Made by a program: the position numbers and the translations under genes | In this document: in pieces, positions 776-49,824 of the stretch | Position numbering within the stretch: the stretch's first letter is position 1 | Layout: each line of letters opens with the position of its first letter | Notes under the pieces: model-generated | Seen by the model: the letters and a program-made list of their open reading frames with translations, nothing else | Databases searched by the model: none | Told to the model about the DNA's origin: nothing | From: Narcine bancroftii | Lineage: Eukaryota | Length of the DNA: 64,000 nucleotides | Assembly (NCBI RefSeq): GCF_036971445.1 | Contig: NC_091478.1 | Span: forward strand, 62,992,001 to 63,056,000 | Direction of reading: 5' to 3'

Positions 776-1039
776 TTCTGGTTTCAAACTCCAGAATACT
801 GTGTACTTACAACTTTCTACTTAAAACTGGCCAGATCGCTCAGTGGATTCATTGGACTTGATTCATTGGATTTGACATTCGGTATGTCAAAACGCCTGCA
901 TTTTCTATCCGTGTTTATCGGGTGTCCTTCTGGTTATTTACCTCTGTTATTGACCTTGAAGCTCGTGGAATTTCATGTCAGAATCTTCATATTGAGGAGT
1001 TATATCTGCCTAAGTTTTTTGCCTTTAACCTGAGATCAC

Positions 1040-4794: not shown

Positions 4795-4916
4795 ATTTCT
4801 TTGGCTTGGCTTCGCGGACGAAGATTTATGGAGGGGGTAAAAAGTCCACGTCAGCTGCAGGCTCGTTTGTGGCTGACAAGTCCGATGCGGGACAGGCAGA
4901 CACGATTGCAGCGGTT
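4795..4916 (-). mobile_element. RTE LINE extreme 3'-end fragment (copy at ~40558-40679)
   Basis: Near-identical to the 3' end of the RTE element at 30985-31105 (TTCTTTGGCTTGGCTTCGCGGA...GCAGCGG). Confidence 0.85.
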
Positions 4917-5790
4917 AATGGTTACTTCCATTTACCCGTAATTGAAACCACACATTTGAATAGCAAAAATAAATGAGTTTGGGCTGTCTTTGGTAACTTT
5001 AATAATTATGCAGCCCAGATCATAAAATCTATTGATATTCAATTACTGGTGCACCTACCCTGCCATTGAGCTAATTAAATGAAAGATGTTCCTGGGTATC
5101 AACCTTCATAATTGCACATCTACAACATTCAATCTACTTTGAGGCTGCCTCTGTAGTGGCCCTGAAAATTGGTAGACTGCCAGAATGATCATGTCCATTC
5201 ACAAGTTGTGGGATCTGTTTGCATGCAAGTGTTTTGCTGACGAAACAGAATCACTCATCACCATCCACACCATCAGACTAATGAGCTCCTTTACCGATAT
5301 CCTGGTCCCAGTTCATGGTTTTCCAGCTGCTGTGATCACGCTTTTCAATTCTGTTAACCAAGTCATTAGCCTGCTGCCTTCCTCATTTAGATTGAAATAA
5401 AATTCCCACATCTCATTCATTCCACACCATTCAAATGCAGATTTGATGTTATTCGGTACCTGACGATTAGCCCAAAACAAATGCGACTCTGTACAGATAA
5501 TTCTTCATAAAGTTATGTGAGCAGAGTTGGTCACGGCACTCTCACACCATTGATATGGAACATTGTATATCCCCTTGTGGGACTATTCAGGTAATTAACC
5601 AGATTCATTTTAGTTCTGAGGTCTTTGTTGGCTACATGGAGCAATTCACGCCAACGGAGGCAAGGCTTTCCAATTCTTCCTCTGCTAAAGCAATGACTAT
5701 TTTGCTACTGCCTCAGGTATCCACGATGAGCTCGAAGACTTTATCCACTTTGCTGCCAACTTCCACTCCAACCTTAAATTTACTTGGTCC

Positions 5791-7763
5791 GGGCACCAGG
5801 CAAGGGTGCCCCCTTAGCCCTTTATTATTTAACTTAGCTTTAGAACCTTTGGCAATTGCTATCAGAGAAGCACCCAATATTACTGGTATTATTCGTTGCA
5901 GGGATATTCATAAAGTATCACTATATGCAGATGATTTATTGTTATATATTTCCAATCCTGAAAATTCTATTCCTGCAGTTTTATCTTTATTAGCCCAATT
6001 TAGTAATTTTTCGGGATATAAACTGAACTTAAATAAAAGTGAATTATTCCCTTTTAATGGATGGGTTCCTATTTATGATAGTTTACCTTTTAAAATAGCT
6101 AGAGACCATTTTATATATTTAGGGATTAAGATTACTAAAAAACATAAAGATTTGTTTAGGACTAATTTTTTCCCTCTATTGGACCTGATCGGCAGTTTAC
6201 TTACCAATTGGTCACCATTATCCCTATCCATGATAGGCCGAATTAATGCTATTAAGATGATGATCTTACCTAAATTTTTATATATATTTCAAGCTATACC
6301 TATTTTTGTTCCTAAATCTTTTTTTGATAAGGTCGATTCTAAATTGTCCTCGTATATCTGGCAAAACAAGAATCCTAGATTTGGGAAAAAATATTTACAG
6401 AAATCTAAACTAGAGGGAGGGTTGGCATTACCCAACTTAAGAATTTATTACTGGGCAATTAATATTAGTTACTTAAGATATTGGTTGAATTATTCAGAAT
6501 TATCTCTAAATCCCCATTGGGTAAATTTAGAAATTAAACCGATACAAAATTTTTCAATTAGCTCTATTTTGGGAGCGGCTCTCCCTTTTACTCTTACTAA
6601 ATTATATAAACAAATTGATAATCCAATGGCTAAACATACACTACATATATGGTTTCAATTCCGGAGATTTTTTTGGCCTAAGTCATTTTATCTTGGAAAC
6701 TCCTATTGTACTAAATTTCCTTTTTCATCCCTCTCTAATTGATCAAGCTTATTTACTCTGGAAAGTTAAAGGTATAACATGCTTTTCGGATTTATTCTTG
6801 GATAACTTTTTCATGTCATTTGAACAATTATCCATGAAATATGATTTACCTCGATCTCATTTCTTTCGATATTTGCAGATTAGGAGTTTCTTAGTTTCGA
6901 CTTTACCCTCTTTTCCCAATCGGGAGACTACGACTGTTTTAGAGGATATACTATATTCAAAATTCCCTCCAAAAGGTGTGATATCTAAATTATATAATAT
7001 AATTACAAAAATAAATTCTGGGACTTTTGAAAAGTTTAAAAATGATTGGGAAAGAGAACTCAACCTTCATACTTCTAATGAAAATTGGAGTAAAATTCTG
7101 CGACTAGTAAACTCTTCTTCTCTATGTGCAAAACATTCACTAATACAGTTTAAAGTTGTTCATAGAGCTCATATGTCTAAAGATAAACTCCACCGCTTTT
7201 ATTCTCATATCGATCCTATATGTGATAAATGTCAATTGGAAATAGCTTCCCTTACACATATGTTTTGGTCCTGTCCCTCTTTACAGAATTATTGGAAGGA
7301 ATTTTTTTCCATTATGTCTACTGTTTTGAATATTGATTTACAACCACATCCCATTACTGCAATTTTTGGATTACCTATGATAGATTTGACTTATTTATCT
7401 CTTCCTGCGGATCGTATGATTGCTTTTCTTACACTAATGGCTAGAAGATCTATACTATTGAATTGGAAATAGGTTAATCCTCCCACTGTTTTCCAATGTT
7501 TTTGTTAATTCAGATTTGTTTTTTCTTCTTTTTTGGGTTTTTTTTCTCTTTTTTCATATATTGTTATTAATTATATCTTTTTTTTTAGAGATAGTTCACA
7601 CCCTAAACTGGTCTAAATTTTTTTTTATGATATATTTTTATTCTGTAATATTATTGTTTAATATCTCTGTATTAATTCATTACTTACTATGTATTTTTTA
7701 TATCTCTTTGAACTGTATGTGTTTATAAATTATAATAATAATAAAAAGATTGAAAAAGAAAAG
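5791..7763 (+). mobile_element. 5'-truncated L1-clade LINE with 16-bp TSD
   Basis: GTRQGCPLSPLLF, LYADD, YLGI and C-terminal CCHC (CDKC..HMFWSC). A-rich tail. TSD TAAATTTACTTGGTCC at 5775-5790 and 7764-7779. Confidence 0.95.
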
Positions 7764-7796
7764 TAAATTTACTTGGTCCTACTCTCGCAACATACT

Positions 7797-8016
7797 CCAG
7801 GTTCATTAAATATATTTAAGAGGGAATCAGGTTCATTAAATATATTTAAGTGGGAATTAGATATATTTCTTCAGTATAAGGGTATTAAAGGTTACGGAGA
7901 GAAGGCGGGGACGGGGTACTGAACTTTAAGATCAGCCATGATCTCGTTGAATGGCGGAGCAGGCTCGAAGGGACGAATGACCTACTCCTGCTCCTATCTT
8001 CTATGTTTCTATGTTT
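7797..8016 (+). mobile_element. Short CR1 3' end with internal ~30-bp tandem duplication and (CTATGTTT)n tail
   Basis: Near-identical to the reverse complement of 18114-18305. CAGGTTCATTAAATATATTTAAG occurs twice. Confidence 0.9.
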
Positions 8017-8999
8017 TTATTTTTCTCAATTTTTATCTCCTTCTAGAGAGTCTAACTCTCAGTAGACATCGTCAACAAACCCATTAACTCAGATACCTAA
8101 TTTGACTGCTCCTCTTCACACCCTGTTCCCTTTAAGGGGTCTATTAATTTATCTTAATTTTTCAGTCTCCCTCACATCTGCTGCCAGGACAAAGTCTTCC
8201 ATGCCAGATCATCAGAGAAGTCTTCCTTCTTCAAACAACATGGCTTTCCCCCTACCACTATCAAATTGGCCCTCACCCGCATATCCTCCATTAACTGCAC
8301 ATCTGCCCCAGACCTTCCTCTACAAGTGCAAAAAGGATCTCACCTACCACCCCACCAAACTCCATAATCTCTGCCTCTAACCATATTATCCCACTAGCAG
8401 ACACATCTTCCCTTTGTGTCCCTTTCCATTTTCCATAGGACCTCCTCATTTTGTGACTCCTTCATCACAATTCCCCATGGAACCATTGTCTCTGACTTGC
8501 ACCCCAACCTTCACCCACACCTATTCCAGGCTCTAAGTAGTCCTTCCAAATGAAGCAACACTTCACTTGAAAATCTTCGTTGGTTAACAACTGTACTTGG
8601 TGCTCCTGTGGTGCTCTGCTGTACATCATAGAGTCTGGTCACAGACTTGAATAACGCTCTGTTGAGCACCTTGACTCTATACACTAAAATAACTGGATTT
8701 CCCATTGGCCACGCATTTCAATTCTCCATTCAATTCCCTTGCCAATACGTGTTCCCACGATCTCATTCATTGCCAGGCTGAGATCACCTGAAAATTTGAG
8801 GAAAAACAACCCAAATTCCGTCTGGGCAAATTCCAACAGGATGGCGTTAACATCGACATTTCCAGTTTCAGTTAGCACTACCCCCATCGTTCTGTTTGTC
8901 TCTATTCCTTGAGCTGCGTGTCTTTCTCTTCTACTTTCACTCTTTCTCCTTTCAAAATTTAAAAACAACCCCCTTCCCCAATCAATACTCCCCATGGCC

Positions 9000-10550
9000 A
9001 ATACCAGCAGGCAGACTGATAGCACCATGTTGGCTCTGAGCTTCAAAAGGGGAACAAATACGACATTCTATTGCCACAATAGAGACTCCAAGTAGTTTCA
9101 TTCCAGGTGCTTGGGTCCAGAATGTCTCGGAGCGGGTGCAGAACATTCTTAAGTGGGAGAGTGATCAGCCAGAGTCCGTGGTACATATTGATACAGTACA
9201 AACATCATAGGCATGAGTTGGCTAGAGGTCATGGAAAGCAGGGAAGAGGCTGAAGAGCAGTATCTCCAAGGTGGTAATCTTTGGATTATTCCCGGCGCCA
9301 TAAGGTAGGGAAGGTCACAACTGGAAGATAGTGCAAAGAAACTGAAGAGGGGCAGAGTTTTAATTTCTGGGATAATTGTAAGCTTTTCTGCGGAAGTGGT
9401 GACCTTTATAAATGGGAAGGGGTTCGTCTGAAATTGAAGGGAACCAATGTCATGGCACGGGGATTTTCTAATGCTGATTGGTGGGGAGGGATGTTGGTTA
9501 AAACAGATTCACAGGGGGTTGGAACCAAACTGAAGAAATAGAGGAAAAGGTGGTCAGCACACAAGTAGCTGATAGGGGGTTTGTGTGGAAAGAAAGGCAG
9601 ATAGGGAAAAATCGGAGGCATGGGGAATGTGTTACAATGCACAGTGACACAGTGTTAAGTGAAGCAAATAAAGAACAAAAGGCTTGTATTTAAATGCATA
9701 CAACATAAGAAATAAAGTGGACAACCTTGTCGTAAAGTAACAGATTGGCAGGTATGATGTAGTGGCAACCACAGAGTCATGGCTAAAGGATGGATGTCCT
9801 TGAGAACTGAATGTCTGAGGATGAGCAGGTAATCCGGGGTGCTGTCGCTGTGCTGGCAAGGAACAACACTGAATCCTTAAAAGAGCTGACAGGGCTCAGA
9901 AGATATAGAATCAATGTGGGTTCAGTTAAGAAATGGCAAGGGTGAAGACACTGTAAACAGTTATATACACAATTCCAAACGTCAGCCGCGATATGGAAAA
10001 AGCAGATGGAAAAGACGTGTCAGAAAGACCATGTTATGGTAGTCATAGGGGATTAAATATGCAAGTAGATTGAGAAAACCAGGTTGGCACTGGATCTCAA
10101 GAGAGAGATTTCGTAGAAAGCCGATGAGATTACTTTTTCGAGCAGCTTGTTGATGAGCCCACGAGGGGATTGGCTGTATTGTAGTGGGTCTGGAGCATGA
10201 ACCCGAGGTGATTCGATTGCTTTGAGTGAAGGAATCAATAAGGGCAGTTATCATAATATATACGATTGAGTTCAATTTGAGATTTACAAGGAGAAAACAA
10301 AGGCAGATGTGCAGTAAAGGGAATTACACTGACATGAAAGAGGAACTGGCCAAAGTAGATTGGAAGGGGGCACTAGTAGAGAAGACAGCAGAGCAGAAAT
10401 GGATGGAGTTTCTGCAAGAAATGGGGAAGTATAAATACAAACCCCCAAAAAAGGGGAATATTCGAAAAGAAAAATGTCACAATTATGGCTGACTCGGAAA
10501 GTCAAAGCCAACGTGAAAGCAAAAAAGAGCAACAGAAAATAGTGGGAAGA
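9000..10550 (+). mobile_element. Degraded CR1 LINE 5' half (SGNH-esterase ORF1 and AP-endonuclease remnants)
   Basis: Frameshifted QPESVVHI, LYLNAYNIRNKVDNL, YDVVATTESWL and KGNYTDMKEELAKVDW motifs. Confidence 0.75.
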
Positions 10551-10842
10551 CTATCTCCGGCTCCCAAGCAAAGACCGGTACACACAGCAAACCACGCCAA
10601 GGCGGTCCAAAGAAGAAAGAAGACCATCTGAACGCTTAAAGCACTATGTGCTCCGATTATTGTTAAATACTTTCCCTTTTATAGTTATAATTACTCATGG
10701 GGTGTATTCTAATTCTCACTTGTAGTCCTGGGCCTATGAAATTTTTATAGTTGGAAGGGACCCAGTCAGCATTTATCGTTGGGTGGAAACCGCCCTCTGC
10801 TGGACATTATGACACCCATTGCCCTTCCACGTGTATAAACAT

Positions 10843-10844
<2 letters not shown>

Positions 10845-10874
<30 letters not shown>
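10845..10874. repeat. (TA)n microsatellite, one unit shorter in copy 2 (~46610-46637)
   Basis: Direct reading. The offset drops from 35765 to 35763 across it. Confidence 0.95.
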
Positions 10875-10876
<2 letters not shown>

Positions 10877-11439
10877 CCCCTTGTGTCAGTAGCCATGTTA
10901 GTCTGATGAAAATAAAGGATGAGAAAGCATCAGGTCTCCTTTCATACAGACGTCTGTCTCGTTTTAAATCATACATTTAAGAAGGGCCCAGACCCGAAAC
11001 TTCGTCATATATAGTTACCCCCTGTTGGACGCGGCAGGTCGTGTTAAGCTACAGCATTTCTCCATCTCATAGTATCCAGCTTAATCTCAACCTTCAAACA
11101 ATGTGCTGGACGGGAGTTCAGAGACAGTGATGGACCCGGCGATGTGTGCTACCTTCTGTTTTCCGGGCTTCTCAAATTATCATTCCAGGGCGATACGCAA
11201 CCAGTCGATATTATTTGAGCAGAACATGTTCGACAAAAGATTCCGAACCTCCTCGCACTGCTTAGAAAGTAGGCACCTTGGAAAGCAACGCAGGTGGGTG
11301 GAGTCGGTATGGGTGGACGCGTACGAGTTGGGTGAAGGGCAGGCACTCAATTTGGGGCTGAAAGGCAGCGGTGAGGATGGCTCGCGCGCGGACATCGAAA
11401 CCCGCGAAAGGGAAGCAGGGAGAAGTCGATCCCATCACG

Positions 11440-11945
11440 GCCACCAACCCCTCCCCCCCCCCCCCTCACCCTGGGAGGAAGGATGCTGGACAAGTGACGT
11501 TGAAAGGAGGGCGCAGAGAGCGCTGTAGTCGGTCTGTGAACCCTGGACCCACCTCCCTCGCATTCCCTGCGCGCAGGCCAATGAATTTTTATCATTGCTT
11601 TGTTCGGTAACTCGAGTGTCCGGGCACCCAGGAGGTGGGAAACGTCCCCTCCACCTTCATCACCATCGGGGTTTCAAACAGGTGAGGCAGACGTTCGGCT
11701 GCTCCTCCTCCAACCTCGTCCACTGCAATCGCTGCTTCCGATGTGGTTTCCTTCACGTCGGTGAGACGAAACGCAAACCTGGAGACCTTTTCGTATAGAG
11801 TCGACGATCTGGGTGCGATGGCGATGCCGCGCATTTGATATCCCTGCCATTTCAACGCCTCTTCCCATACTCACACCAACCTGGCCTCTCCACTGCCGGA
11901 GTGAGACCTGTTGCAAGTGGAGCAACAACCTCATGTCATCTTGAA
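11440..11945 (+). mobile_element. Penelope-like GIY-YIG endonuclease fragment (copy at ~47203-47708)
   Basis: FKQVRQTFGCSSSNLVHCNRCFRCGFLHVGETKR matches the Penelope F.C.S.N..YC..C..C...YIGET.R motif. Confidence 0.8.
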
Positions 11946-12169
11946 CGCGGTGACCGGATCCGATTCATCATCTCCTCGGGCAGTGAGTTCTACATATTAA
12001 TGAATCTCCGTGTAAAAAAAAGGATCTTTCAGATCCCCTTGAAACCTTCCTCGCATCTTGAACCGATGCCCTCCCGTTCTTGATGATCCAACCGACGGAG
12101 TAAACCCAATCTGATTATCTACCCTCTCTGTTCTTCTCATCTCGGCCATATTTCTAACGATAAATATAT

Positions 12170-12350
12170 ATACATTTTAAATTTAGCACGGTAACAAGCC
12201 CTTTCTGCCCACCAGCGCGCGCCGCCCAATTTATTCACAATGAACCTATAAAACCCGGTACTTTTCGAACAGTGGGAGGAAGGAAACCATAGACCCGGGG
12301 AAAACCCACTCATTCAATGGACGGAAATTCTTTCTTGTTGCAGCCGAGTT
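12170..12350 (-). mobile_element. SINE fragment (same family as 14205-14335 and 35450-35700)
   Basis: Shares TAAATTTAG...GGTAACA.GCC.TT..GCCCAC.AG and CGAACAGT.G.AG.AA...CC...G.CCCGG.GAAAAC with 35450-35610. Confidence 0.65.
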
Positions 12351-12419
12351 GGTCCTCCGTAAAAAAAGTCACCCGTCCACATTCAATTAAAAAAGAGATA
12401 ATAATTTCAAGCTGTAGTA

Positions 12420-12690
12420 TGGGATTCGAGGACAAGAGGGCACAACTTCAGGATAAAAGGGCGTCAATTTAAGAGAAGCGGAATAGTTTCCTTTGCCAGA
12501 GGATGGTGAGTCTGTGGAATCCAGATCGTTGGGTATATTTAAGGAAGACATTGGCAGGTATTTGATTAGTCAGGGCATCAAGGGTTACGGGGAGAAGACC
12601 TGAGAGTGGGGCTGAGTAGGTGGATGGATCAACTCATGATAGAATAACGGAGAAGCCTCGATGGGCCTAATTCTGCTCCAAAATCTTGTT
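12420..12690 (+). mobile_element. CR1 3' fragment, older subfamily
   Basis: SRTRGHNFRIKG...RMVSLWN, ATCAAGGGTTACGGGGAGAAG, and tail GCCTCGATGGGCCTAATTCTGCTCC. Confidence 0.75.
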
Positions 12691-12929
12691 ATCAATGTAA
12701 GAAGCATGATGTTTGAGCATTGCAGGATTAGTGGGAGAAGGGGGCGTTGTTTCGAGGGGAAATTCATCACAAATCATACTTTCTATATATTAAGTCGTCA
12801 AGGTGATTTCAGGAGGGCAAGAAATTAATGCATTTCAAACTCCTACTTTTCCCCTTCCTCAATTATCGATAGCAAACCCTGAAACGATGTCAACTATTTA
12901 TTTTGAACATATAAATTCAACATTCCAAC

Positions 12930-13033
12930 GTTCACTTCCAGGATGTGATAAGCCCCGGCAACTCGTCATACAACCCAAACGTCACATTTAACAGCGTTCC
13001 TGACTGCAAGGTCATTTGAATCCCTTGTGCAGA
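12930..13033 (+). promoter_or_regulatory. Putative proximal promoter of the receptor (ETS and GATA-like motifs); copy at ~48693-48796
   Basis: Non-repetitive stretch just 5' of the ATG with CACTTCCAGGATGTGATAAG (overlapping ETS cores, then TGATAA) and AACGTCA. These are motif matches only. Confidence 0.3.
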
Positions 13034-13073
13034 ATGTCAGGGACTGCGATTGTTCTCCTTCTGCTTCTCCGAG
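13034..13073 (+). CDS. Receptor copy 1 exon 1: signal peptide MSGTAIVLLLLLR
   Basis: AGAATGT start context, hydrophobic core, phase-1 donor GAG|GTAATA 116 bp before the V exon. This is the typical IgSF split leader. Confidence 0.85.
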
Positions 13074-14028
13074 GTAATATTTAACCAGTACCATTTTGTT
13101 CCTTGTTCTACTTATTTAGTTCTCTCTCTTTATCTCCCATCTCGATGCCGGCCTCACCGATTTAATTGCGCCATGTTACATTTTCTCAGCAGTTGCAGAT
13201 CAGCGAGGTTTTCATGTAAATCAATTACCCAAAGAAACCAGTATACCAGTCGGGGGAAATGTAACCTTTTATTGTGTGTTCCCCATCATCCGCGACAAGT
13301 CCAGTGTGAAGGTCTACTGGTGGAAGGAGGGTGAGAATACATACCAACACAGCGATGTCGCCAATAGAAAACGATATTGTCTCCGAGGTAGAGCAAGTTG
13401 GTACTTTGAGTTGTGCAAAGCAACTGTCCAAGATTCTGGAGTATATCGCTGTTCCGTCATCGGTCCGGAAATGGTTGCAATCAATGGAAGTGGATCGCGT
13501 CTAATTGTTCACGGTAAATCATATTAACGGGAAAGGCAAACAGCGAATAATTGTCTGAACAATAAGAAACGGAAAGGCTGGTAGACAGACCATGATTTGT
13601 CGATACCCCTCTACCCGCTCAATGAAGATGAGGAAGGCGGAGATTCTGCCGCCCGTCTCCCAACTCGTACAGTTCGCGGTTATGTTCATGCCCGCCCGAA
13701 GAGGCTCGCTGCAACGTGACACAAAGCTTTATGGATTCTCATTTGTATTGTCTAGTATATTCACCATCCTCACCCAGTCCCCCATCCTATAACTATTTTG
13801 TCTGATGTGGATCAAACAACCTGCAAATAAAAGCATTCCTCAGCCATTCTATATTCAGAAGATCATCGCTCCACCATTGTCCGAGTACATTGCGGGAACA
13901 ATATCACAAGTTATAAGTAGCAAAAGGGAACCATTGAAAATGGTGGAAGTAGAAGATAACCACCCATTCACTCACGCCGCCCCACACACTCAATCATTCT
14001 CTCTCTGTCTCTTTCTCTCTCTCTCTCA

Positions 14029-14061
<33 letters not shown>

Positions 14062-17000
14062 TACCCATTTTAATTCGACGGAGAAGCTCGTTCGTTCTCA
14101 TTATTTTTCATGGAATATTGGTTACTTCCCAACTACTTCCAGGAAAGAATTAGTCCGCATTCTGTCTTTCTCACGCAACATTGACAGATTTGTTTCAACT
14201 GAGGCAACACGGTAGGCAAAGCGGTTAGCGCAACGCTGTTTACAGCGCCAGCGACCGGGAACGGGGGTTCGACGCCCACGCTTTCTACAAGGAGTTTGTA
14301 CGTTCTCCCAGTGTCTGCGTGGATTTTTCTCCGGAGTCCGGAGATGCGAAATATTCTTCGCTATCAGAGAGAGCAATAATCACGGAGGAGCTCCCGAGCC
14401 CTCCCCCCTCCCCCCCCCCCCCCCCCCCCCACAAAGTGTTCTTGGTGAATTATTTGGATTACGAATGGAGAAAACGACTTTCTCAAGGAGGGTTTGGTTC
14501 GGCCTCTCTCCGAAATATTCAGATATGTTAACTAACTGAACAGAAAACGGCTTCTTCTGTTTCACAGGGGATTGGGATTTTCAAAGAGCATAATTCGAAT
14601 TCATAGATGAGGTTGGGAAAGAACTGTTTTAAAAATTCCCAGTCATTGGATTAAATTAATCCAAATCTTTATTTACTCGTATTTCAGTGGCGCCAACTCC
14701 ACTGAAAATCTACTCCAAGACTGTTGATGGGAATCCACTCACTAGACATGTTCTCGTATGCGAAACGGCTGCATTTTACCCGGAGAATCTCACCCTAATT
14801 TGGTACCGAAATGGAACGAAAATCACAGCGGGAACTCATACAAGGAAAGCGAAGAACGCGGAGGGATTGTATGTAGTTTCCAGCGATTTAACCTACAGCA
14901 ACGGCGAGGATCAATATGCCTGCAAGGTATATCACCTCTCTCTCCAGACTCCAGCCGTTGCCAGGTATTCTGTTGCGAAACAAGGTATGTCGTCAACAGT
15001 CTAGTGAGTCGTGATTTGTTGTAAATGTCTTGATGCATTGTATAAATTCTTGCAGTTAATAATTCCGAAATTAAATCTTTCAAATTCCATGAGGAAATAT
15101 AGGATGGAGCATTGATTTAATTTCCAATTTGTATAAGAAAACCTGTGCGTCTGAGGCATGGCCACTCAAATGCCGTTGGCAATCAAAAATAAAATTATTT
15201 GCTGCGCTACAGAAGTATAGAGATATTAATCGTTCACGTTTTATACCCACCTCATTTTCATTAGGTTTATTTTGTTTTCAATTTTAAGTGTGTCAGAGTT
15301 TTGCTCTACCACCATCTCTAAACTTCTTGTCCTTCTTGGAACTCTTAAATCTGCAGTTTGCTTTGCAAATTAATTTGGACTACATTCAAGCAATTTAGAA
15401 ACTTCGAGTATTAATTATGTGCACATAATTTGTTCTGTATTTATTGATATTTTTCTGTTCACTCGTGTACAGCGTAATTCCACCCAGTTGTGTTTCAGCC
15501 CTATTCTGACCGCTCCACTCACAAATGGACATAGAATGCATTTAATATGAAAACCTAATGTTACTGAGTCCAGAGGACCCCAAAAACTAGCAGCAATAAA
15601 TATGCTCCACAACACAGGGTTACTTCAACAAAAAAAGTTTTTAATTATATTTGAACAGTAAATCAGAATTGAACTTTAACATTACTTATCTTACCTAATA
15701 CTTAATACTCCCCCACTCCCCCATCCCTCTAGTACTAAGCGCAGGTGTGTGTAATGTATATTTTAGATTGGAAAAGTTCTTTGGATCACAGTCCAATATC
15801 ACTGGTTCCAGGCAATTCTTGTACTGTGCACAGAAGTTTGCATTAGCAAAGTTCACCAGTCTTTGATGCTTAACAGGCAAATGGTTACCACTCAGTAGGG
15901 TTCTTGCTGGTTTTCAGTGATAGATTCCTTTTCAAGACATCTGATTCCTTCTCAATCAGTCTTGCTGACCAACCTCGCCCCTTTCAGGGTTCTCCAGATG
16001 ATCCTCTTTCTTTCAGGTCACCTTTCAGACCGCCAATCTCCTCCTCTGAACAGACAGCCTTCCAACGTTTGCCAGCGTGTCCCCCGTAACGTATTTCTGT
16101 CTCCTCTCTCTCTCTCTCTCTGTTTCACATCCTTGCTCTCTGAGAGCAAAACCCTTCTCCTCTGCCTGCAAATATATCATTCTCTCCCAGGCAAGCTGCT
16201 GTCGATAATTTGTTGCCTCCTGCAAAAAGCATTCTGAAATAGTCCTGCAAATAATTTGTATTTTAAAATGTGTGTGTGTGTGTGCAAGCTGCTCTAAGAA
16301 TTCCTCCCAAACCACCTGTGAATACTCTGTCACACTAACAAGTATAATAAATATTCCTAATAACTTTGCAGATTCTCGCAATACACTCGCAAACTACCTG
16401 GTTCCTAGTGGCGTGGTGGTTGGATTACTGATTTTAGTGCTAATGATTGTTGTCGGGGTACGGTTGGGACGACAGGAACTTGAAGGTAAGATCTGGATTG
16501 AACGCTCGATGTTACTGAACACGGAAGAATTGTAAAATTCCTTTAATCTGTTGACAGCTTTGACAAACCGCCGGTCATCCTGAACGAGGAGTTGCCTCTT
16601 CTCGGTGACTGAACGTCCGTTCTCCTTTTCCCAATTCAGATTTTGCCTACTAAGAAGCAATAATGATTGCCATGTTCACCCTAGAACAACTGGAAGAAAC
16701 TGCAGGGAACAGGATGAACCACCAATCAAAGCCACATAATTTGGGAACTGAGAAGAATATGATGAATTCATTTCCAGTTCGACCTAACGCAAAAAGCCAC
16801 CTCCATTCCATGTATGTTACACGTGATGATATGGGAGAGCGACTGGTCTATGCGCTCAGAACAGGCTCAATGGCAATCGAGTGGCATCTAAGGATCGTAG
16901 CTCATGCATCCTTCGTTTACGACCCTGTTTCTCCTGCAGTTTTGCACTTCACATCATACAGGTTTACACTTCATGAGCAGTTAATCCGTCAGGCAATGTG

Positions 17001-20000
17001 AAAAATATTCGACATTTGTGGCATTCACACCGGGATCAAGTTTTACAGAAAATATGGTTATAAAGCCGAACTCTGCAGATTATACTTGTGCACTTATGTT
17101 GTGAAAGCCAGACTCCCTGACTACTTTCATGAAGCGTCTGCAAATTTTAAGTAAAGACTCTCAACCAATCTCCTGCTGCTGAACATAACCCAACTCCATG
17201 CTCCAACACGGGGCAGAGGAATATTCTCTATCTCATTCTCCATCAAAGGAAACTCATCTAAGTGTATCCTAATCAGCTCTGCTTCAAATGAAGCTCCCGA
17301 CCTGAAGAAGAGAATGTTCAAATTTCAATTCTGGCTCTGGTATAATATACTTTTAGATATCAGTGAGTTCTGCTCTAACCCGCACTTCAGATGTATGGTC
17401 GATTTTTTAAAATTAACTTGCAAACACTTAACAGATAATATGAATGCCCCAATAGGCTAACCAAACCAAAAGCCTTTTAAAACAATATTGTCACCAAAAT
17501 CTAATTCAAACTCAAGCAACATCAATATGCAGAGCTCGTGGTTCGTTTACCTATCACCAGTATCTCCAATGGAGCAGTCTATTCCGAAAGGCGCCCTTGA
17601 AAATAATTATCTGGAGCGTAAGGAAAATAACGCATGGATATTTTCAAAGCGTCCATGAAAACAGCTAACGTTGTGGCAGCTTCATTGCGATTCTGGCATT
17701 GAACGATCGAAACATTGTAAAGAATCATCCAAGAGTCTATGGTGTAAGGAAAAAAAGCTGGTTATCAGTCGGATACAGAAACAAAGGAAATAGTGCAAGC
17801 AGCAGGCAATCGTCCATGACCCACAAGCTCACACACACAAACTACCTGTGCAAAGCCTAAATCCACATTCGCTGCACCATTACCTCAGAAACGTACCTGC
17901 GGAGCAATGATTCAATTACATTTTCGACTTCAGTCCAATTAAAAAAATGTCATTTGATGGCATTGGTCGCCTTGTTAATGTTTTCCTTCATTTCGGAATT
18001 AAACAAAATACCACTGGTAAAATGAATTTGGGTTCGATTTGAGGATAGAAAAGATGTCACAATGCGAAATACGAAATATTTCCAGCATTTGTCCATTTCC
18101 CGAAATATATTTTAGAAACATAGAAACATAGAAGATAGGAGCAGAAGTAGGTCATTCGACCCTTCGAGCCTGCTCCGCCATTCAACGAGTATATTGGCTG
18201 ATCTTAAAGTTCAGTACCCCGTCCCGCCTTCTCTCCGTAACCTTTAATACCCTTATACTGAAGAAATATATCTAATTCCCTCTTAAATATATTTAATGAA
18301 CCTGCCTCCACTGCCCTCTGTGGCAATGAATTCCACAGATTCACCACCCTCTGGATAAAGAAATTCCTCCTCCTCTCGGTCCTAAATGGTTTGCCTATTA
18401 TCCTCAAACCATGGCCCCGGGTTCTGGATTTTCCCATCATTGGAAACATCCCATCTGCATCCACTCTGTCCAGTCCTGCCAGAATTTTATATGTCTCTAT
18501 GAGATACCCTCTCAATCTTCTAAACTCCAGCGAGTACAATCCCAATCTGCGCAATCTTTCCTCATAAGTCATTCCTGCCATTCCAGGTATCAGCCTGGTG
18601 AATCTCCTCTGCACTCCCTCCATTACAAGAACATCCTTCCTTAGATAAGGTGACCAAAACTGCACACAATACTCCAGGTGTGGTCTCACCAAGGCCCTGT
18701 ACAACTGCAGTAAGGTATTCTTGTTCCTATACTCAAACCCTCTTGATATGAAGGCCAACATACCATTTGCCTTTTTAACCGCCTGCTGTACCTGCATGCT
18801 CGCCTTCAGAGACTTGTGTACAAGTACCCCTAGGTCTCTCTGCACTTCCCCATCTCTTAATCTATTGCCATTCAAATAGTAATCTGCCCTCCGGTTTGTA
18901 TTACCAAAGTGGATAACCTCACATTTATCCACATTGTAGTGCATTTGCCATGTATCTGCCCAGTCCCTCAATTTATCCAAATCACACTGGAGCTTCCTGA
19001 CCCCCTCTTCCGTGCACAAAACCCCTCCGAGCTTAGTGTCGTCTGCAAATTTGGAGATATCCGCACTGCGAATGATGTTAAACGTTATAATGACATTAAA
19101 ATTTCGCCTCTTTCAAGGTGAAGAGGAATGTGGGATGGAACCAAATGGCCACCAGGATCAGGTATGTCCCTTCATTTATTCATACTGGTCAATGCTGGAA
19201 ATGCCAAGAAATAGACTGAATTAGAGCGACTATATTCTGCTCACATTAGAAACTTTACGTATGTTTACCAGAAGTATTAATCGGATTCAGAATTTATTGT
19301 CATGATCAAGTCATGAAATTCGGTGTTTTGCAGCAGCATCTTAATGAGAACATGGATATAACCATCTTACGACATTACTATAAAGGTAAAAGAAAGTAAT
19401 TAAAAACAAATGTGCAAGGTAGGATTTTTGGATCATTAAACATTCAGGAATCTGATGGCAGCGGGGATCAAGCTGTCTTGTGCCGTTGAGAGCTCGACTT
19501 TAGGCTCCCGTACTTTTCGCAGATGGTAGTAGAGTGAATCTGGAATAGGCTGTGTGCTGGGTGGTGGGGGGTTCTTAAGGATTGAGGCAGTGTTTTTTTT
19601 TTAAAGACACCACCTCATGTAGATGTCCGCGATGGTCCCAGACAGAGTTAACAACCCTCTGCAGTTTATTCTTGTCCTGAGAGTTAGTGTCTCCATACCA
19701 GGTAGTGATGCAACCAGCCAGAATGCTCTCCACGGTCCACTTGTGACATGCTCCTCAGACACCTCACAAAGTATAGCCGCTGGCGAACCTTCTTGGTGAT
19801 TAGATCAACGTGGAGGCTCCAGGACAGATCCTTGGAGATGTTAACACCCAGGAATTTGAAGTTCTTGATCCGCTCCACAAATCCGGTCACAGAGGACTTT
19901 TCAAATGGTTATCACAATGTCCTTGGTTTCAGCGTTTTCAAGTGTTAAATGTCTGATTAACAGATCAAGGTTCAGTAGCAGTGGTTAAATGTTGGAGATC

Positions 20001-20555
20001 GTCGCTCTTTGAAACTCTTCCAAAGTCAAAACTGATAGGTTTAAATAAAATATGATGTTCATCGTGCCATAATATTTGCAACTGTATCCATATATTTATA
20101 CATGAACTCGTGTCCTTGATCTCAAGCCCAGAGCAAACTATTTAAGGATTGACACGGACACTTAGTTGAATAATATTTTTGTCGAACTTTTCAGAGAGAA
20201 GAGAGCAACATGATACATTATGTTGCAATACATTTCGACACGTCCAGGAAGGCTACAAAACAAAAACGTCTTGACGCAAGGCATGCTTTTGATCAGGTGA
20301 GTGTAAATAACGGTGTAGAGAGTTCATTAATTGGATACTATTTCTCAAGCATACGATTTGAGCAGCACATCCCAAAACAAATGAAAAAGCCAAATAGCAG
20401 TATTTTCTCAATTGCCTTTACAGAAAATGCAAGGGGAACCAAGGGGAACCAGCACAGAGTATAGGATAAACTGCAAAGAGAGCACAGAATATGCGGAGGT
20501 GAAAACAAAAAAAGACCGCGGAGCAACAGAGGCGCTTTATTCAACAATAAGATAA
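13034..20555 (+). CDS. VJ-C1-TM-ITIM/ITSM immunoglobulin-superfamily receptor, copy 1 (7 exons, ~350 aa; SIRP/NKp30/PRARP-like architecture)
   Basis: Exons join(13034-13073,13190-13513,14688-14984,16372-16485,19118-19161,20195-20296,20424-20555). All introns are GT-AG with phases 1,1,1,1,0,0, and the frame stays open to TAA. Protein: MSGTAIVLLLLLRAVADQRGFHVNQLPKETSIPVGGNVTFYC...VYWWK...DSGVYRCSVIGPEMVAINGSGSRLIVH / VAPTP...LVCETAAFYPENLTLIWYRNG...YACKVYHLSL... / DSRNTLANYLVPSGVVVGLLILVLMIVVGVRLGRQELE / GEEECGMEPNGHQDQ / REESNMIHYVAIHFD...AFDQ / KMQGEPRGTSTEYRINCKESTEYAEVKTKKDRGATEALYSTIR*. Confidence 0.88.
13190..13513 (+). CDS. Receptor copy 1 exon 2: Ig V domain with germline-joined J-like segment
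   Basis: VNQLP (A strand), GGNVTFYC (B Cys), VYWW (C Trp), DSGVYRC (F Cys), NGSGSRLIV (GxG-S-x-L-x-V). Acceptor TTTTCTCAG, donor CACG|GTAAAT. Confidence 0.95.
13998..14059. repeat. (CT)n(CA)n compound microsatellite in receptor intron 2 (copy at ~49761-49822)
   Basis: Direct reading. Confidence 0.9.
14203..14335 (+). mobile_element. tRNA-derived SINE 5' part in intron 2 (copy at ~49966-50098)
   Basis: A-box-like GGTAGGCAAAGCGG, B-box-like GGTTCGACGCCC, then the core AAGGAGTTTGTACGTTCTCCC.GTGTCTGCGTGG.TTT.CTCCGG. Confidence 0.75.
14398..14430. repeat. Poly-C tract, 5 bp longer in copy 2 (~50161-50198)
   Basis: Direct reading. The offset changes from 35763 to 35768 here. Confidence 0.9.
14688..14984 (+). 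CDS. Receptor copy 1 exon 3: Ig C1-set domain
   Basis: LVCETAAFYP (C-x4-FYP), IWYRNG, GLYVVSSDL and YACKVYHLSL (YxCxVxH Ig/MHC signature). Acceptor ATTTCAG, donor AAG|GTATGT. Confidence 0.95.
15559..16334. mobile_element. Solo LTR (776 bp, Gypsy-like) in receptor intron 3
   Basis: Termini TGTTACTGAGT...ACTCTGTCACA (TG..CA, 9/11 inverted match). 4-bp TSD CTAA at 15555-15558 and 16335-16338. Confidence 0.8.
16372..16485 (+). CDS. Receptor copy 1 exon 4: stalk and transmembrane helix
   Basis: YLVPSGVVVGLLILVLMIVVGV followed by the basic RLGR. Acceptor TTTGCAG, donor GAAG|GTAAGA, phase 1-1. Confidence 0.92.
18113..19060 (-). mobile_element. Young 5'-truncated CR1 LINE in receptor intron 4
   Basis: Uninterrupted 271-aa ORF2 C-terminus (KFADDTKL upstream, WQMHYNVDKCEVIHFG, LVRPHLEYCVQFWSP, RTRGH, FFIQRVVNLWNSLP). 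(CTATGTTT)n tail. Confidence 0.95.
19118..19161 (+). CDS. Receptor copy 1 exon 5: short cytoplasmic exon GEEECGMEPNGHQDQ
   Basis: Acceptor CCTCTTTCAAG, donor CAG|GTATGT. It supplies the phase 1-to-0 bridge needed between the TM exon and exon 6. Confidence 0.7.
19285..19890 (-). mobile_element. Rex1/Babar LINE 3' fragment in intron 5
   Basis: VERIKNFKFLGVNISKDLSWSLHVDLITKKVRQRLYFVRCLR. Confidence 0.85.
20195..20296 (+). CDS. Receptor copy 1 exon 6: cytoplasmic exon with ITIM IHYVAI
   Basis: Acceptor CTTTTCAG, donor CAG|GTGAGT (consensus). I-x-Y-x-x-I motif at 20213-20230. Confidence 0.82.
20424..20555 (+). CDS. Receptor copy 1 exon 7: terminal coding exon with TEYAEV (ITSM) and ALYSTI
   Basis: Acceptor CCTTTACAG. 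The phase-0 reading gives three tyrosine motifs, then TAA at 20553-20555. It is too short to appear in the ORF track. Confidence 0.82.
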   Translation, partial: KMQGEPRGTSTEYRINCKESTEYAEVKTKKDRGATEALYSTIR

Positions 20556-20689
20556 ATATACCAGTCAGGCTGCAGTGGCGAAGACTCGTTTCTGACGTAT
20601 TTCAATCGCAATCTGCTTCAAAATCAACTTTTTGATGCTATTTTTTGTAATTTTATTCAGTATCTGATTTAGTTTTTCCCAAAACGTAT

Positions 20690-23600
20690 TAACTTTTGTA
20701 CATACCAAAGTTGCATGTAATGTTGTTCCCATTTCCCTCTTACAGCAAAAACATCTATCCGATAAGGTTGAATCTCATTTAAAAATTTTTTGAGGAGTGA
20801 TATATACCCTGTGTAACCAATTAAACTGTATCATGCGTAACCTTGTGTTTATTGTATTCTTCATAGTTCCAGAACAACTTTTCAAATACTTCATTTTTAT
20901 CTTTATGTTTAGATCCTTTTCCCAATTCTGCTTAGGTTTATAATTTATTTCATTTTCCTTATCTTGCAGCTTAATGTACATGATGGTTATAAATCTTTTA
21001 ATTTCCATTGTGTCTGTAATTACATTTTCAAAGCTGCTTCCTTCAGGTAATCTCAAGCTGTTTACCAATTTATCCTTTAAATAAGCTTTCAATTGATGAT
21101 ATGCAAACATTGTCCATGAGTTATCCCATATTTGTACTTCAACTGTTCAAATGTTAATAAATTATTTCCCAAAAAATAATTTTCTATTCTTTTGATTCTT
21201 TTTCTCTCCCATTCTCTAAAGGAAAGGTTGTCTGTTGTAAAAGGATCTGGCAGATTGAGGGTCAATAATAATTTTTGTATTTGATAATTCGCTTTTTTTC
21301 CCTTTCTAAGTGGATCTTCTTCCATATATTGTAAATGATGCAGTACTGGTGTGTTATCATATTGCACCAACTTTTCATCCCACTTATAAAGTATATGTTC
21401 CAGTACCTTCTCCCCTATTTTATCTAGTTCTATCTTAGTCCAGTCTAGTTTTTCCCTTGTCTGGTAAAAATCTGATAAATACCTTAATTGTGTTGCTCTA
21501 TAATAATTTATAAAATTTGGTAACTGCAAACCACCTTGATTATACCTCTCTGCTAATTTATCTAATGCTACCTTTGATTTCCTCCCTTTCCACAAGAATT
21601 TCCTTATTATTCTCTTTAGTTCATTAAAGAACTTTTCTGTTAAAAGAATTGGTAATGTTTGAAATAAGTATTGTATTCTTGGGAACACGTTCATTTTAAT
21701 GCAGTTCACCCTCCCTATCAACGTTAGGGGTAATTCTTTTCAATGTTCTAAGTCTTCCTGCAATTTCTTTATTAGTGGCTGATAATTTAGTTTGTATAAG
21801 TGGCTTAAGTTATTATCTAACCTGATCCTAGGTATCGGATTGCTTGTGCTTGCCATCTAAATGGTGATTCTTTGTTAACTTCTGTATAGTCTGCAATACT
21901 CATTGGAATCACTTCACTTTTATTTCATTGATCTTGTAACCTGATATTTCTCCAAATTCCATCAATTTCTTATGACATTCTTTTACTGATAACTCTGGTT
22001 CTGTTAGGTATACTATGATGTCATCTGCAAATAAGCTGATTTTATACTCCTCCTTTTCTTTAATCATTTTTATTTTATTTTCTATTCTTATCAGTTCTGC
22101 CAAAGTTTCTATTGCTAAGGCGAACAATGAGGGGCATAGTGGACATCCCTGTCTAGTTGACCTACTTAATTTAAAGTGACTCGATACATATCAATTTACT
22201 GCTACCTTCGCCAATGGTCCATTATACAATGCTATAATCCAATTTATATTTTTTTTTCCTGTAGATTGAACTTCTGTAATACTTTAAGTAAGTAGTTCCA
22301 CTCTACTCTGTCAAAGGCTTTTTCTGCATTCTAGAGCAACAGCCACTGTTGGTTTCTTATTTCCTTAAACTGCATGGATTAGATTAATAAGTTTACAGAC
22401 ATTGTCCACTGTTTGTCTTTTCTTAATAAATCTAGTTTGATCTAGTTTTACTATTTTAGGAACACAGTCAGCCAATCTGTTAGCTAATAATTTCACTATT
22501 ATCTTATAGTCTAAATTAAGTAGAGATATTGGTCTATATGATGTTGGTGTTAATGAGTCCTTTCTAATCTTTGGTATTAATTTATTTTCATAATTTAATT
22601 TATATAAAAATTGATAATTAACATTCAAAATTATACCCAGATATTTGATTCGATCAGTCCACTTCAAATTAATAATATTCTTATAAACTGAATAATCTCC
22701 TTCACTTACCGGTAACATTTCACTTTTTTCCCAATTAACTTTATATCCAGAAAGACATCCATTTTGTATTAAACATTCCTTCAAATGCAAAGGTGACTGA
22801 GGTTGGTTTATTAAATACACCAATACATCATCAGCAAATAAATTAATTTTATACTCCTCATCTAAAACTTTCATACCTTGTATCTGTGTATTTTGTCTTA
22901 TCAACTGTGTTAAAGGTTCAATCACTAACACAAACAAAGCTGATGATAAAGGAAAATCTTGATGAGTTGATTGAGTTAACTTAAAAGATTCTGAAATCAA
23001 ACCATTCCTCAATATTCTAGCTACCAGTTTACTATATAGAGACCTAATCCAACTAATAAAAGAAGGACCAAATTTAAGTTTCTCCAAAACTTTAAATAAA
23101 AAATTCCATTCAACTCTATCAAATGCTTTTTATACATCTAAGGATATCACCATCGGATGATCATCAAACTAATCATGCGAAAAATGTTATCTGAAGCATA
23201 ATTATTCTTTATAAAACCTGTTTGATCAATATGAATCAACTTTGGTAAAAGTTTAGCCAATCTATTCGCTAATTCTTTAGCTATTATTTTATAATCTACA
23301 TTTAACAACGAAAGTGATCTATATGAAGATACTTTCAAAGGATCTCTACCTTTTTTTTTAGGAATTACTGTAATTAAAGCACCAGAACAAGACTCAGGTA
23401 AATCATGAAGTTCTCCAACTTGATGTGATACATCCCCAAACACAGAAGATAAATCATCATAAAAGATTTATAAAACTCAACCGAAAATCTATCATCACCA
23501 TGAGACTTACCATTCGCCAATTCCAGCATAGCCATTTTAATTTCTGAATCAGTAAATGGTTCTTCTAACTCCTGTATATCTCCATCCTCTAATATTGGTA

Positions 23601-26600
23601 AATTCAACTGTGATTTAAAAAAATCAATCGATCCAGTTTCCTGTTTTCCTTCAAATGTATATAATTTTTTATAAAATGAATAAAATTCATCATTGATCTC
23701 ATGAGGTTTATAAGTATAAGAGAATTCCATCTAACAGCATTAATAGTCCTCGATATCTGTTCTTTCTTTAATTGCCATGCCAATACCTTATCTGCTTGCT
23801 CTCCCCATTCATAATACTGTTGTTTAGTCCTATTAATCACACATTCAAATTGATAAGATTGCAAAGTATTATATTTCATTTTCAGCCTAGGTAATTCTAT
23901 TTTCTGATCTTCTGTAGTAGCATCTTTCTGAAATTCCTTTTCTAACATCGATCTGTTTCTCTAATTCAAAACTCTGATTTAATCGATTTTTTTTTATTTT
24001 AGAAGTATAACTAATTATTTGTCCTCTCAAATAGGCTTTCATATCATCTCATAATACAAACTTACTTTGAAGAGAATTATAATTTTCTTTAAAAAAAAAT
24101 TAATTTGTTTTTTCAAAAAATCACTAAATTCCATATTTTTTAACATTGTATTAAATCTCCAATGATAAGCTATTTGAATTTTCTCAGAAGTTTAATATGT
24201 AAAATATAACAGAGAATGATTTGACATCACCCTACTTTTATATTCCGCTTGTTGTATTTTCCCTTTTAAATGTGCTGATACTAAAATGAACTCAATTCTT
24301 GAAAATGATTCATGACTAGATGAATAAAAGGAAAAATCTTTCTCTGTTGGATTAAGATGTCTCCAAATATCTACTAAATTAAGATCTTTCATCAATGCTT
24401 GGACCTGGATTGCCATCTTAGATTTTTTTTACTTTCTTCGGAGATTTATCTAATAAAGGTTCCAAAAACACAATTAAAATCACCACCAACTAAAATATAA
24501 TCATTAGCTTGACCCAAACATATAAATGCCTCCGAAATAAAAACTTCATCATCTGGATTTGGAGCATAAATAGTAAGTAAAGTCCAAAATTCACTAAAAA
24601 TCTTACAATTCAATTTGTGATTGAATCATGCCCTTTCCTCCATTGATTGTAATTCAAAAGATAAATTTTTATGTATCAAAATTGCTACACTTTTAGCTCT
24701 AGAATTAAATGAAGAATGATATACATGTCCAACCCAGTCCCTTTTTAATTTCATGCTTTCCTTCACATTCAAATGTGTTTCTTGTAAAAAGGCAATATCA
24801 ATTCTCATTTTCTTAATATTAACTTCTGTTTAATCATACTATTTAATTATCGAACATTAAAAGTATCAAACAACTTTGACATATCTACTATTATTACTAA
24901 ATATCAATAATATCTTTATATAAAAACTCAAATCAACGTATATAGACCCTCCAATAAAAAAAATCACAAATTAAAAACTAAAAAATAAAACAAAAATAAA
25001 AAACAATAAAGAAAAAGAAAAAAAGAAAACTCCTTAAAAAAAGCTAAGAAAGGTAGTAATCCCCTAAACAAAAATTGAGTCTGTGTCACCCACCAGTGGC
25101 TGATGACTAGTAAAGAACTTAGTGCAAATCTCTCCCTCCCCAGCCAAACAATCAGTAACATCAAAATATCGTAATTACAAAAAAAAAATAGAATAAGAAA
25201 ATTCTTCTTTTGATCCAAAAGATTCCAATCTCGAAGATCCCATTTCAGAAGGAGGTAGACTCTTTCCATTCCCGTTTTTCCCATTTCTGCCATTTCTTCC
25301 ATTTCCAGAGCTACCAAAGTTTTCTTTAGGGGATAATGGAGGACTACGTCTTTGTCCTCTTATATCTGGCAAAGAGTCAGCAAAAATAATTGCTTCAGAA
25401 TCAGTTTCAAAAAACAGAAATTCATAGTCTCCGTAAAACACCTTCAAAACTGCAGGGTAACGAAAAGTAGACTGAAACTTTTACGCCACAAAGCTTATTT
25501 AACTGGATTGAATCGATGTTGATGTTGAATGACATCTTGACTCAGATCAGGATAAGAAAAGACTCTGCTATACTGAATCAATAATGGGGTTTTTCATTGT
25601 CTCACATTTTGTACTGCAAGTTGAAGTATGGCTTGTATATCCAAATAAATCAAACATCGAATTATTACCGGTCTTGGGGGTTGACCAGCTGAGGGTATTC
25701 TTCTTAAAGCTCTATAGGCTCTTTCCAGTACCAATCCCCCAGAGAAAAATTCTGGCCCTAATATTTGCGGAATCCAGTCTTTAAAAAAACGAAGAAAATC
25801 TTCTGGCAAACCTACAATTTTCACATTATTCCTTCTGCTTTGATTTTCCAAATAATTTATTTTTCTTTCTAGCTCCTTCTCATGATCTCATAATTCTATG
25901 ACTGATTTTTACACCTTCAACACTTTTTCTGTATTAGAAGTCACTTGTTGTTTACAGTCCAAAAAAGCAGTCTGAATTAAAAAAAATTCTTCATAAGTTG
26001 CATCCACACGTGTCTTAACCATATTTAATTCTGAACTCATAGCAGCATTCATTTCAACCATTTCAATATTCTGAGATGTCAACAAATCCATTCCAGGTTT
26101 TATAACAGCTTGAATAATTGCATTCAATTGCATACACTGTGAATCAGCAAATCTCAGCTCTGCTCTCTCTGACATAGTGGCTGTACAAGGTAACTGCAGC
26201 TCCTGATGCAACTCAACAGAAGGCATTTTAAAAGTTTAACTGCGGGTCTGGACTCCCAGCGATGGCACCCCGACTTCCTCAGGGTGTTGCTGCTGGTCTC
26301 CCCCCCTCCAGTATCTCATTGTTTTCTCACCAATTCGCAAAGAAAAACAATTTCTTCAGATTAAAATGCTACCTGGTGCATTTCCATCAATGGCGTCATC
26401 TTCCTGCATACTCCCTCCATTGAAATTGAAAGTCTTTCCAAATCGGGGTCCATTTCTTGGAAACACACACCTTCTTCTGGAGAACGAGTAATTCCAGCGC
26501 ACTCCTTCATTTGGTGAACAATAGATTATTTTCAGCCCCCACAGGCGATCTTTGGGGTTAAGGCAATGAAGAAATTGAGCCTGGGGCTGTTTCAGGTCTC

Positions 26601-49791: not shown

Positions 49792-49824
<33 letters not shown>

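Follow-up and report, generated by a model that had tools for sequence, protein, structure and literature searches.

Within a 64,000-nucleotide stretch of the genome of the electric ray Narcine bancroftii (RefSeq assembly GCF_036971445.1, contig NC_091478.1, positions 62,992,001 to 63,056,000 of the forward strand; hereafter the window, with positions counted from its first letter) seven exons on the forward strand between 13034 and 20555 form a gene in which a leader, an immunoglobulin-type variable (V) domain with a germline J-like strand, a constant C1-set domain, a transmembrane (TM) segment and a long cytoplasmic tail follow one another. We consider it probable, at a rough probability of 0.68, that this is a working gene present in two near-identical tandem copies, and that it would encode a non-rearranging type I receptor of the long-tailed inhibitory branch of a multigene family of sharks, rays and chimaeras, with SIRP-alpha as its nearest characterised relative. 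The locus is of the paired inhibitory/activating immunoglobulin superfamily (IgSF) receptor kind with a germline VJ, closest to SIRP, and is not a new kind of system. That the seven-exon gene is real, far beyond chance, is confirmed by the identity of most of its exons with a RefSeq model, P0210, and by joints in RNA at the exact predicted borders.

Structure of the gene

All seven exons (Table 1) are open, their phases are compatible, every intron runs from GT to AG and the last exon closes with a stop codon. The product comes to 350 residues, a figure summed from the codons of each exon rather than read from an assembled spliced protein, and every sequence search was likewise run exon by exon and never on the joined seven-exon protein. 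The window has no N runs. A first-pass annotation, made from the letters of the window before any search, had described seven small exons of consistent phase and about 350 residues, and all its borders proved to be as placed; it had also proposed a VJ domain in a single exon without recombination signal sequences (RSS), a true C1 domain, and an inhibitory-type tail below a TM segment not of the CD3-associating type, and these proposals agree with what follows.

The V exon runs unbroken from FYC through YRC to the J-like GSGSRLIV and on to the splice donor, and an RSS scan of 12900-15100 was negative for exact heptamers; between YRC and the J motif, heptamers with one mismatch were absent too. 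A rearranging receptor (Ig, TCR or IgNAR) was rejected as the identity of the gene because V and J share one exon and no exact heptamer lies in that interval. The V exon is recognised as Pfam V-set (E=4e-8) and exon 3 as C1-set (E=1e-11, 45 bits against a cut-off of 21). An AlphaFold2 (AF2) model of the V exon reached a predicted local distance difference test (pLDDT) score of 86.6, with shark IgNAR V domains as the best Foldseek matches, followed by TCR V, PD-L1 V and CD79b; the AF2 model of the C1 exon (pLDDT 78.5) was closest in fold to beta-2-microglobulin and the membrane-proximal domains of MHC class II, and the sequence matches of this exon in the PDB were beta-2-microglobulin, MHC class I alpha-3 and Ig constant domains. 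The TM segment is uncharged, and the tail bears motifs of both the immunoreceptor tyrosine-based inhibitory (ITIM) and switch (ITSM) types.

Besides its canonical pair the V domain has two further cysteines, in RYC (13376-13378) and ELC (13412-13414). The first of these is Gly in an expressed paralogue (13378 T in the window, G in the paralogue).

Table 1. Positions of the exons, tail motifs and repeats in the window.
Feature	Position	Strand	Description
Exon 1	13034..13073	+	Start codon and first part of the split leader, MSGTAIVLLLLLR plus 1 base; ends in phase 1; same leader in RefSeq paralogue P0135
Exon 2	13190..13513	+	Leader end and V domain with germline J-like G strand GSGSRLIV; phase 1-1
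Exon 3	14688..14984	+	C1-set Ig domain (VCETAAFYP ... YACKVYH); phase 1-1
Exon 4	16372..16485	+	Stalk and uncharged TM segment VVVGLLILVLMIVVGV; phase 1-1
Exon 5	19118..19161	+	Short cytoplasmic exon; also in P0210 and P0135
Exon 6	20195..20296	+	Cytoplasmic, ITIM-type IHYVAI; identical in P0210
Exon 7	20424..20555	+	TEYRIN, ITSM-type TEYAEV, ALYSTI, stop codon
IHYVAI (ITIM-type)	20213-20230	+	Exon 6; aligns with VHYAAL of family members
TEYRIN	20454-20471	+	Exon 7
TEYAEV (ITSM-type)	20484-20501	+	Exon 7
ALYSTI	20532-20549	+	Exon 7
10-bp direct repeat caaggggaac, twice	20430..20449	+	With two units the conserved ITSM-bearing long tail is read
Alternative first exon of P0210 (doubtful)	13622..13754	+	MKMRKAEIL...FVLS, inside the V-C1 intron; without a typical signal peptide
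Tandem repeat, first unit	1..28232	.	Equals 35745-64000 at 99.79% identity (32 mismatches, 11 gaps); period about 35.76 kb
Second gene copy	48797..56323	+	Exons 48797-48836, 48953-49276, 50456-50752, 52140-52253, 54886-54929, 55963-56064, 56192-56323

A tandem repeat with a unit of about 35.76 kb makes up the window, which spans about 1.8 units, and the gene therefore occurs twice in it, the second copy lying 35.76 kb downstream of the first. The exons of the two copies are identical save for AC>CA at 52153-52154 in the TM exon, which turns a Leu of the stalk into Ile. Each repeat unit holds a single V exon and a single C1 exon. Either a duplication of very recent date or the assembly of two haplotypes one after the other could account for the tandem arrangement.

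Annotated models and transcripts

The RefSeq model P0210 ('IgG receptor FcRn large subunit p51-like') corresponds to exons 3-7 at 100% identity and leaves out the leader and the V exon; this letter-for-letter match makes the window that gene's own locus. Four of the six splice joints (3>4, 4>5, 5>6 and 6>7) agree with the model. The V exon is 97% identical to P0002 and P0135, isoforms X2 and X1 of an 'uncharacterized protein' that represents a paralogue in N. bancroftii; both are modelled as leader-V-TM-tail, without C1, and differ from the window gene at three residues in V and two in exon 6. The V exon starts at a NAGNAG acceptor (cag/cag, 13187-13192), which explains the two isoforms of the paralogue (LLRAVADQ versus LLRVADQ). 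No model containing the leader and V of the copy studied here was found in RefSeq.

RNA was available as assembled contigs from four small runs (X1-X4) of one study, with 13170-19165 as the stretch covered; exons 1, 6 and 7 lie outside it, and their joints rest on the RefSeq models P0135 and P0210. Depth falls on the exons, and on repeats within introns, and the runs therefore behave as RNA. The C1>TM joint (14984>16372) was present in runs X1, X2 and X3 and the TM>exon 5 joint (16485>19118) in all four, each at the exact predicted border. The C1, TM and tail exons are expressed. Contigs with C1 are of two kinds, one with the exact letters of the window and the other a three-base variant.

Cytoplasmic tail

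The tail frame of the window gene is the conserved C-terminus of the family, as TEYAEV..TEALYSTIR beside TDYAELQ..TEAVYSEARIK of P0148 illustrates, and the order of the motifs (HYxAx, TEYAEx, xxYSxx, end) is kept across the family. The paralogue P0002/P0135 ends in KMQGEPAQSIG, which fits a single unit of the 10-bp repeat followed by an early stop. A slippage indel in this repeat seems to switch the tail between its long and short forms.

A multigene family of cartilaginous fishes

A full HMMER scan with the V exon gave 134 representative matches, and every named one among the best-scoring was chondrichthyan; the genera looked up among the better matches were Hypanus, Hemitrygon, Mobula, Amblyraja, Scyliorhinus, Mustelus, Heterodontus, Heptranchias, Carcharodon and Callorhinchus. 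Several family members usually share one chromosome. Their automatic names conflict, ranging over SIRP-alpha-like (PTPNS1-like), SIRP-beta-1-like, tapasin-related-like, NCR3LG1-like, CD276 homologue, Ig lambda-like and MHC II beta-like. A search with a family profile, in which only candidates preselected by a word index are scored, returned 53 cartilaginous-fish proteins at E<=1e-54 and then dropped to 7e-13, the value of one teleost protein of NITR-like build (P0208) that was the sole non-chondrichthyan vertebrate match of this profile.

The window V exon is 49-56% identical to the nearest members in other species and fits the family pattern NVTFYC..VYWWK..DSGVY.C plus the strand G.G[ST].[LIV].[VI], and the C1 exon fits PTPLKI..LVCETA.FYPE..WYKNG..EGLYEVSS..Y.C.V.H and carries all invariant columns of the family alignment A3. 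Most members are built as leader-V(J)-C1-TM with the J motif G.G[ST].[LIV].[VI] conserved, and V, C1, TM and tail are joined in RefSeq models of other cartilaginous fishes (eleven genera among those examined), in which isoform pairs with and without C1 also occur. Separate trees of V and C1, built from family members, each put the window's exon into one and the same clade of batoids, beside shark members (support 95 and 82). Because the two exons take the same tree position and the invariant residues are all kept, the C1 exon is part of the gene lineage and under constraint.

Three types of tail occur in the family. In the long-tail type, to which the window gene belongs, HYAAL, TVYAQ, LTYATL, TEYAEL and xxYSxx follow in order; the short-tail type has Arg, and often also Asp (...IIVDH), in the TM segment (P0157, P0159, P0206, P0163, P0024, P0151, P0152 and P0004); and a third type is without tail tyrosines. 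The short-tailed members with charged TM segments are likely to be activating partners that would use an adaptor with an ITAM (immunoreceptor tyrosine-based activation motif).

The first-pass annotation had proposed a cartilaginous-fish receptor family, and the gene does belong to one; no description of the family was found in full-text literature searches, including a search by protein accession, and an earlier account is possible.

Two members, P0039 (Amblyraja radiata) and P0154 (Chiloscyllium plagiosum), have two near-identical C1 domains, and their V-C1-C1 build merely resembles that of SIRP because it stems from a recent duplication of the C1 exon. Multi-V proteins (P0001, P0005, P0025, P0081 and P0087) also match the ray V exon, with up to 16 matched V stretches and up to 3550 amino acids. 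The short ones looked up come from turtles and squamates, have J-like strands and VTYADL/VIYAEV tails, and are automatically named pIgR-like or titin-like. These multi-V proteins may represent another unnamed VJ receptor family.

Comparison with characterised receptors

The best non-antibody PDB entries for the whole-family profile were UrIg2 (9dmx, 5e-34) and SIRP-alpha (2wng, 2.5e-28), and with a C1 profile UrIg2 came first, SIRP-alpha third and SIRP-gamma fourth. A V-only profile matched IgNAR V, TCR beta/alpha V and CD79b over the full V+J length, in a list swamped by multi-domain I-set proteins with summed scores, of which only the single-domain rows are informative; NKp30 was absent from its best 60 PDB matches. 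By language-model features, the nearest neighbours of a full-length family member were SIRP-alpha clusters (0.97), and those of the V exon by itself were 'antigen receptor' V fragments (0.95). Judged by these sequence comparisons, SIRP-alpha is the closest characterised family overall, and V alone is most like IgNAR and TCR V. Since SIRP-alpha is the nearest known family for C1 and for the whole protein, the family is best read as SIRP-like paired receptors and not as something beyond the known kinds; the earlier picture of a TCR or Ig light chain shape on a SIRP-alpha/PD-1 tail was fair as a description.

SIRP proteins combine one V with two C1 domains, signal from ITIMs via SHP-1/2, have a DAP12-coupled partner and occur in D1-only splice forms (PMC12975943). 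The window gene and its family share with them an N-terminal V with a J-like strand followed by C1-set in a type I membrane protein, a presumed inhibitory member with several tail tyrosine motifs, paired short-tailed members with a basic TM residue, and splice forms without C1 domains. They differ from SIRP in that the window gene has one C1 instead of two and a V that is not specifically like SIRP D1, and in that the expansion of the family is, as far as searched, confined to cartilaginous fishes. The likeness could go as far as orthology, such that the family would be the cartilaginous-fish orthologue (or a set of co-orthologues) of SIRP, a known gene under its proper name; the automatic names in RefSeq, the rank of SIRP-alpha and SIRP-gamma with the C1 profile, the nearest language-model clusters and the shared pattern of paired members and D1-only forms all speak for it. 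We nevertheless hold orthology to be unlikely, if a reading of real weight, because there is one C1 and not two, the two-C1 members being recent exon duplications, because the V profile finds IgNAR, TCR and CD79b with no SIRP D1 in the best 60, and because UrIg2 outscores SIRP-alpha with both the whole-family and the C1 profile.

UrIg consists of VJ and three C1 domains and is secreted, and UrIg2 has VJ and nine or more C1 domains (PMC12227049). As non-rearranging shark genes with a single-exon VJ, a split leader and C1-type constant domains they resemble the ray gene, whereas an ITIM/ITSM tail or membership of a large multigene family has been described for neither. Identity with either was rejected, the window gene having one C1, a TM segment and a long tail. 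The V domains of IgNAR and TCR are the best full-length matches of the V exon, J strand included, by profile, fold and language-model features; the window gene differs from them in being germline-joined, without RSS or a V/J split, and the identity is only about 25%.

Among other non-rearranging VJ receptors, PRARP of bony vertebrates reportedly (from the abstract of a 2019 paper, cited in PMC10751288) has a VJ domain, a TM segment, a possible ITIM and, outside birds, a C1 domain, and by that description its overall plan would be that of the window gene. NITRs, the novel immune-type receptors of teleosts, consist of V or V plus I domains and are not known to have C1. They share VJ-type V domains, ITIM tails and clusters of inhibitory and activating members with the family described here, and the teleost protein P0208 has such a build; the C1 domain of the window gene sets it apart from them, and the profile E-value of P0208 is only 7e-13. 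NKp30 (NCR3) is an activating receptor with a single VJ domain, no C1 and a charged TM segment, and identity with it was rejected in view of the C1 exon, uncharged TM segment and ITIM/ITSM tail of the window gene.

A ligand of the B7/B7-H6 type, rather than a receptor, would suit the finding that the V exon, searched as a single sequence, matches PD-L1 best in the PDB (E=3e-5), as well as the names NCR3LG1-like and CD276 homologue borne by some members and the tyrosine-free tails of one subfamily. We regard a ligand as highly improbable: the PD-L1 match is limited to residues 12-88, with the J strand outside it, the GxGxxLxV strand is conserved across the family, the tail of the window gene bears ITIM and ITSM motifs, and the profile searches favour antigen-receptor, UrIg2 and SIRP matches.

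Evidence on the joined V-C1 chain

Several observations tell against a working V-C1 inhibitory receptor close to SIRP. No V>C1 joint was found in the four RNA contig sets (contigs can miss rare forms), and no RefSeq model of N. bancroftii joining V to C1 was found. Every V contig has the paralogue letters 13263T, 13339G, 13366G and 13378G, not the 13263A, 13339A, 13366A and 13378T of the window. In the tail, the first tyrosine and the ITSM tyrosine are 48 residues apart, a wider spacing than is known from receptors in which a pair of motifs binds the two SH2 domains of a single phosphatase, and two family motifs are degenerate (AFDQ for VYAQ, TEYRIN for LTYATL). SIRP D1 is absent from the best 60 PDB matches of the V-only profile.

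The first-pass description of a VJ-C1 receptor, and its set of predicted junctions, thus stand in part: both exons are intact and joints 3>4 and 4>5 are found in RNA at the exact borders, but the V>C1 splice was not seen in the four contig sets. Since contigs drop rare forms, the missing joint does not disprove the splice, and we infer the V>C1 joint in N. bancroftii from other species. A joint from V directly to TM (13513>16372), which skips C1 and bears the letters of the paralogue, was found at the exact predicted border in runs X1, X2 and X4.

This species might instead make no V-C1 chain, but a V-TM-tail product in which C1 is always skipped together with a separate C1-TM-tail transcript from a start in the V-C1 intron. 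Such split products would account for the finding of V joined to nothing but TM and for the greater depth of that joint (99, compared with 44 for C1>TM, in run X1), for the start of P0210 at 13622 and the skipping of C1 in P0002/P0135, and for C1 contigs that end exactly at the acceptor, an ending which also hints at two or more upstream sequences in the assembly graph. We think split products quite unlikely. The first exon of P0210 (13622-13754) is doubtful: contig depth is zero in bins 13570-13769 in all four RNA runs and the peptide lacks a typical signal sequence, and a C1 ectodomain lacking a leader could not be delivered to the membrane in the correct orientation. In addition, contig depths do not count transcripts, the V and C1 exons are equally well conserved and take the same tree position, and V is joined to C1 in the models of other species.

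The window gene might also be a decaying or silent duplicate, with the paralogue alone in use. The V contigs with paralogue letters only, the extra V cysteines, one of which sits where most aligned family members have Gly, and a 99.8% identical twin that could be an assembly artefact would fit such a state. This we judge very unlikely, as all seven exons are open in both copies, contigs with the exact C1 letters of the window exist, and the window keeps the conserved long tail frame, the truncated tail being that of the paralogue. The first-pass annotation had missed the other gene copy at 48797-56323, the paralogue present in RefSeq, the V>TM splice that skips C1, and the absence of a V>C1 joint from the RNA contigs.

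Proposed function

As a long-tailed inhibitory receptor, the protein would bind a surface ligand through its V domain. The tail motifs suggest that Src-family kinases would phosphorylate its tyrosines, with IHYVAI serving as ITIM and TEYAEV as ITSM, and that SH2 phosphatases of the SHP-1/SHP-2 type would then dock on the phosphorylated tail and damp cell activation. Relatives whose tails are short and whose TM segments contain Arg (and Asp) would act as activating partners. The C1 exon is a phase 1-1 cassette, which when kept would give a V-C1 form and when skipped a V-only form, as in SIRP splice variants.

Surrounding sequence

The remaining long open reading frames (ORFs) of the window are reverse-transcriptase fragments, and there is no other gene in it. 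Retroelement ORF fragments (RVT_1, zf-RVT) flank the gene at 5555-7472, 22365-23087 and 31299-32300. The view of the gene as hidden among retroelements was right as to the flanking fragments; wholly hidden it is not, since exons 3-7 are annotated, if misleadingly, and the family is annotated in more than ten species. Over repeats in the introns (14170-14369, 15570-16369 and 17970-19165) RNA contig depth reaches from thousands to above 100,000, as transcribed interspersed repeats; 14200-14330 resembles the head of a tRNA-derived short interspersed nuclear element (SINE), and 18113-18304 has inverted copies at 7828-8019 and 43593-43784. The V-C1 intron also holds a (CA)n microsatellite and a poly-C tract (14020-14060 / 14393-14442), and the poly-C differs by 5 bases between the gene copies.

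Significance

Non-rearranging genes in which a joined VJ exon stands beside C1 are material for reconstructing the origins of antibodies and T-cell receptors, and to our knowledge the named ones are few (SIRP, PRARP, UrIg and UrIg2). Cartilaginous fishes carry a large clustered family of VJ-C1 genes that resemble paired inhibitory/activating receptors and are filed under contradictory automatic names, and the reference annotation of the electric ray splits the gene, with V in one model and C1 plus the tail in another. Comparative immunologists would benefit from a name for the family, from corrected models and from trees that include SIRP, PRARP, UrIg and Ig/TCR. A bolder view, which we rate as improbable, would make the family an ancient and still unnamed offshoot of the non-rearranging VJ-C1 lineage beside SIRP, PRARP and UrIg, kept as paired inhibitory and activating receptors, whose V would be the closest germline-joined relative of the IgNAR/TCR-type V. 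If true, it would be a further living candidate for the type of gene that was split by the RAG transposon, and one that signals through the membrane.

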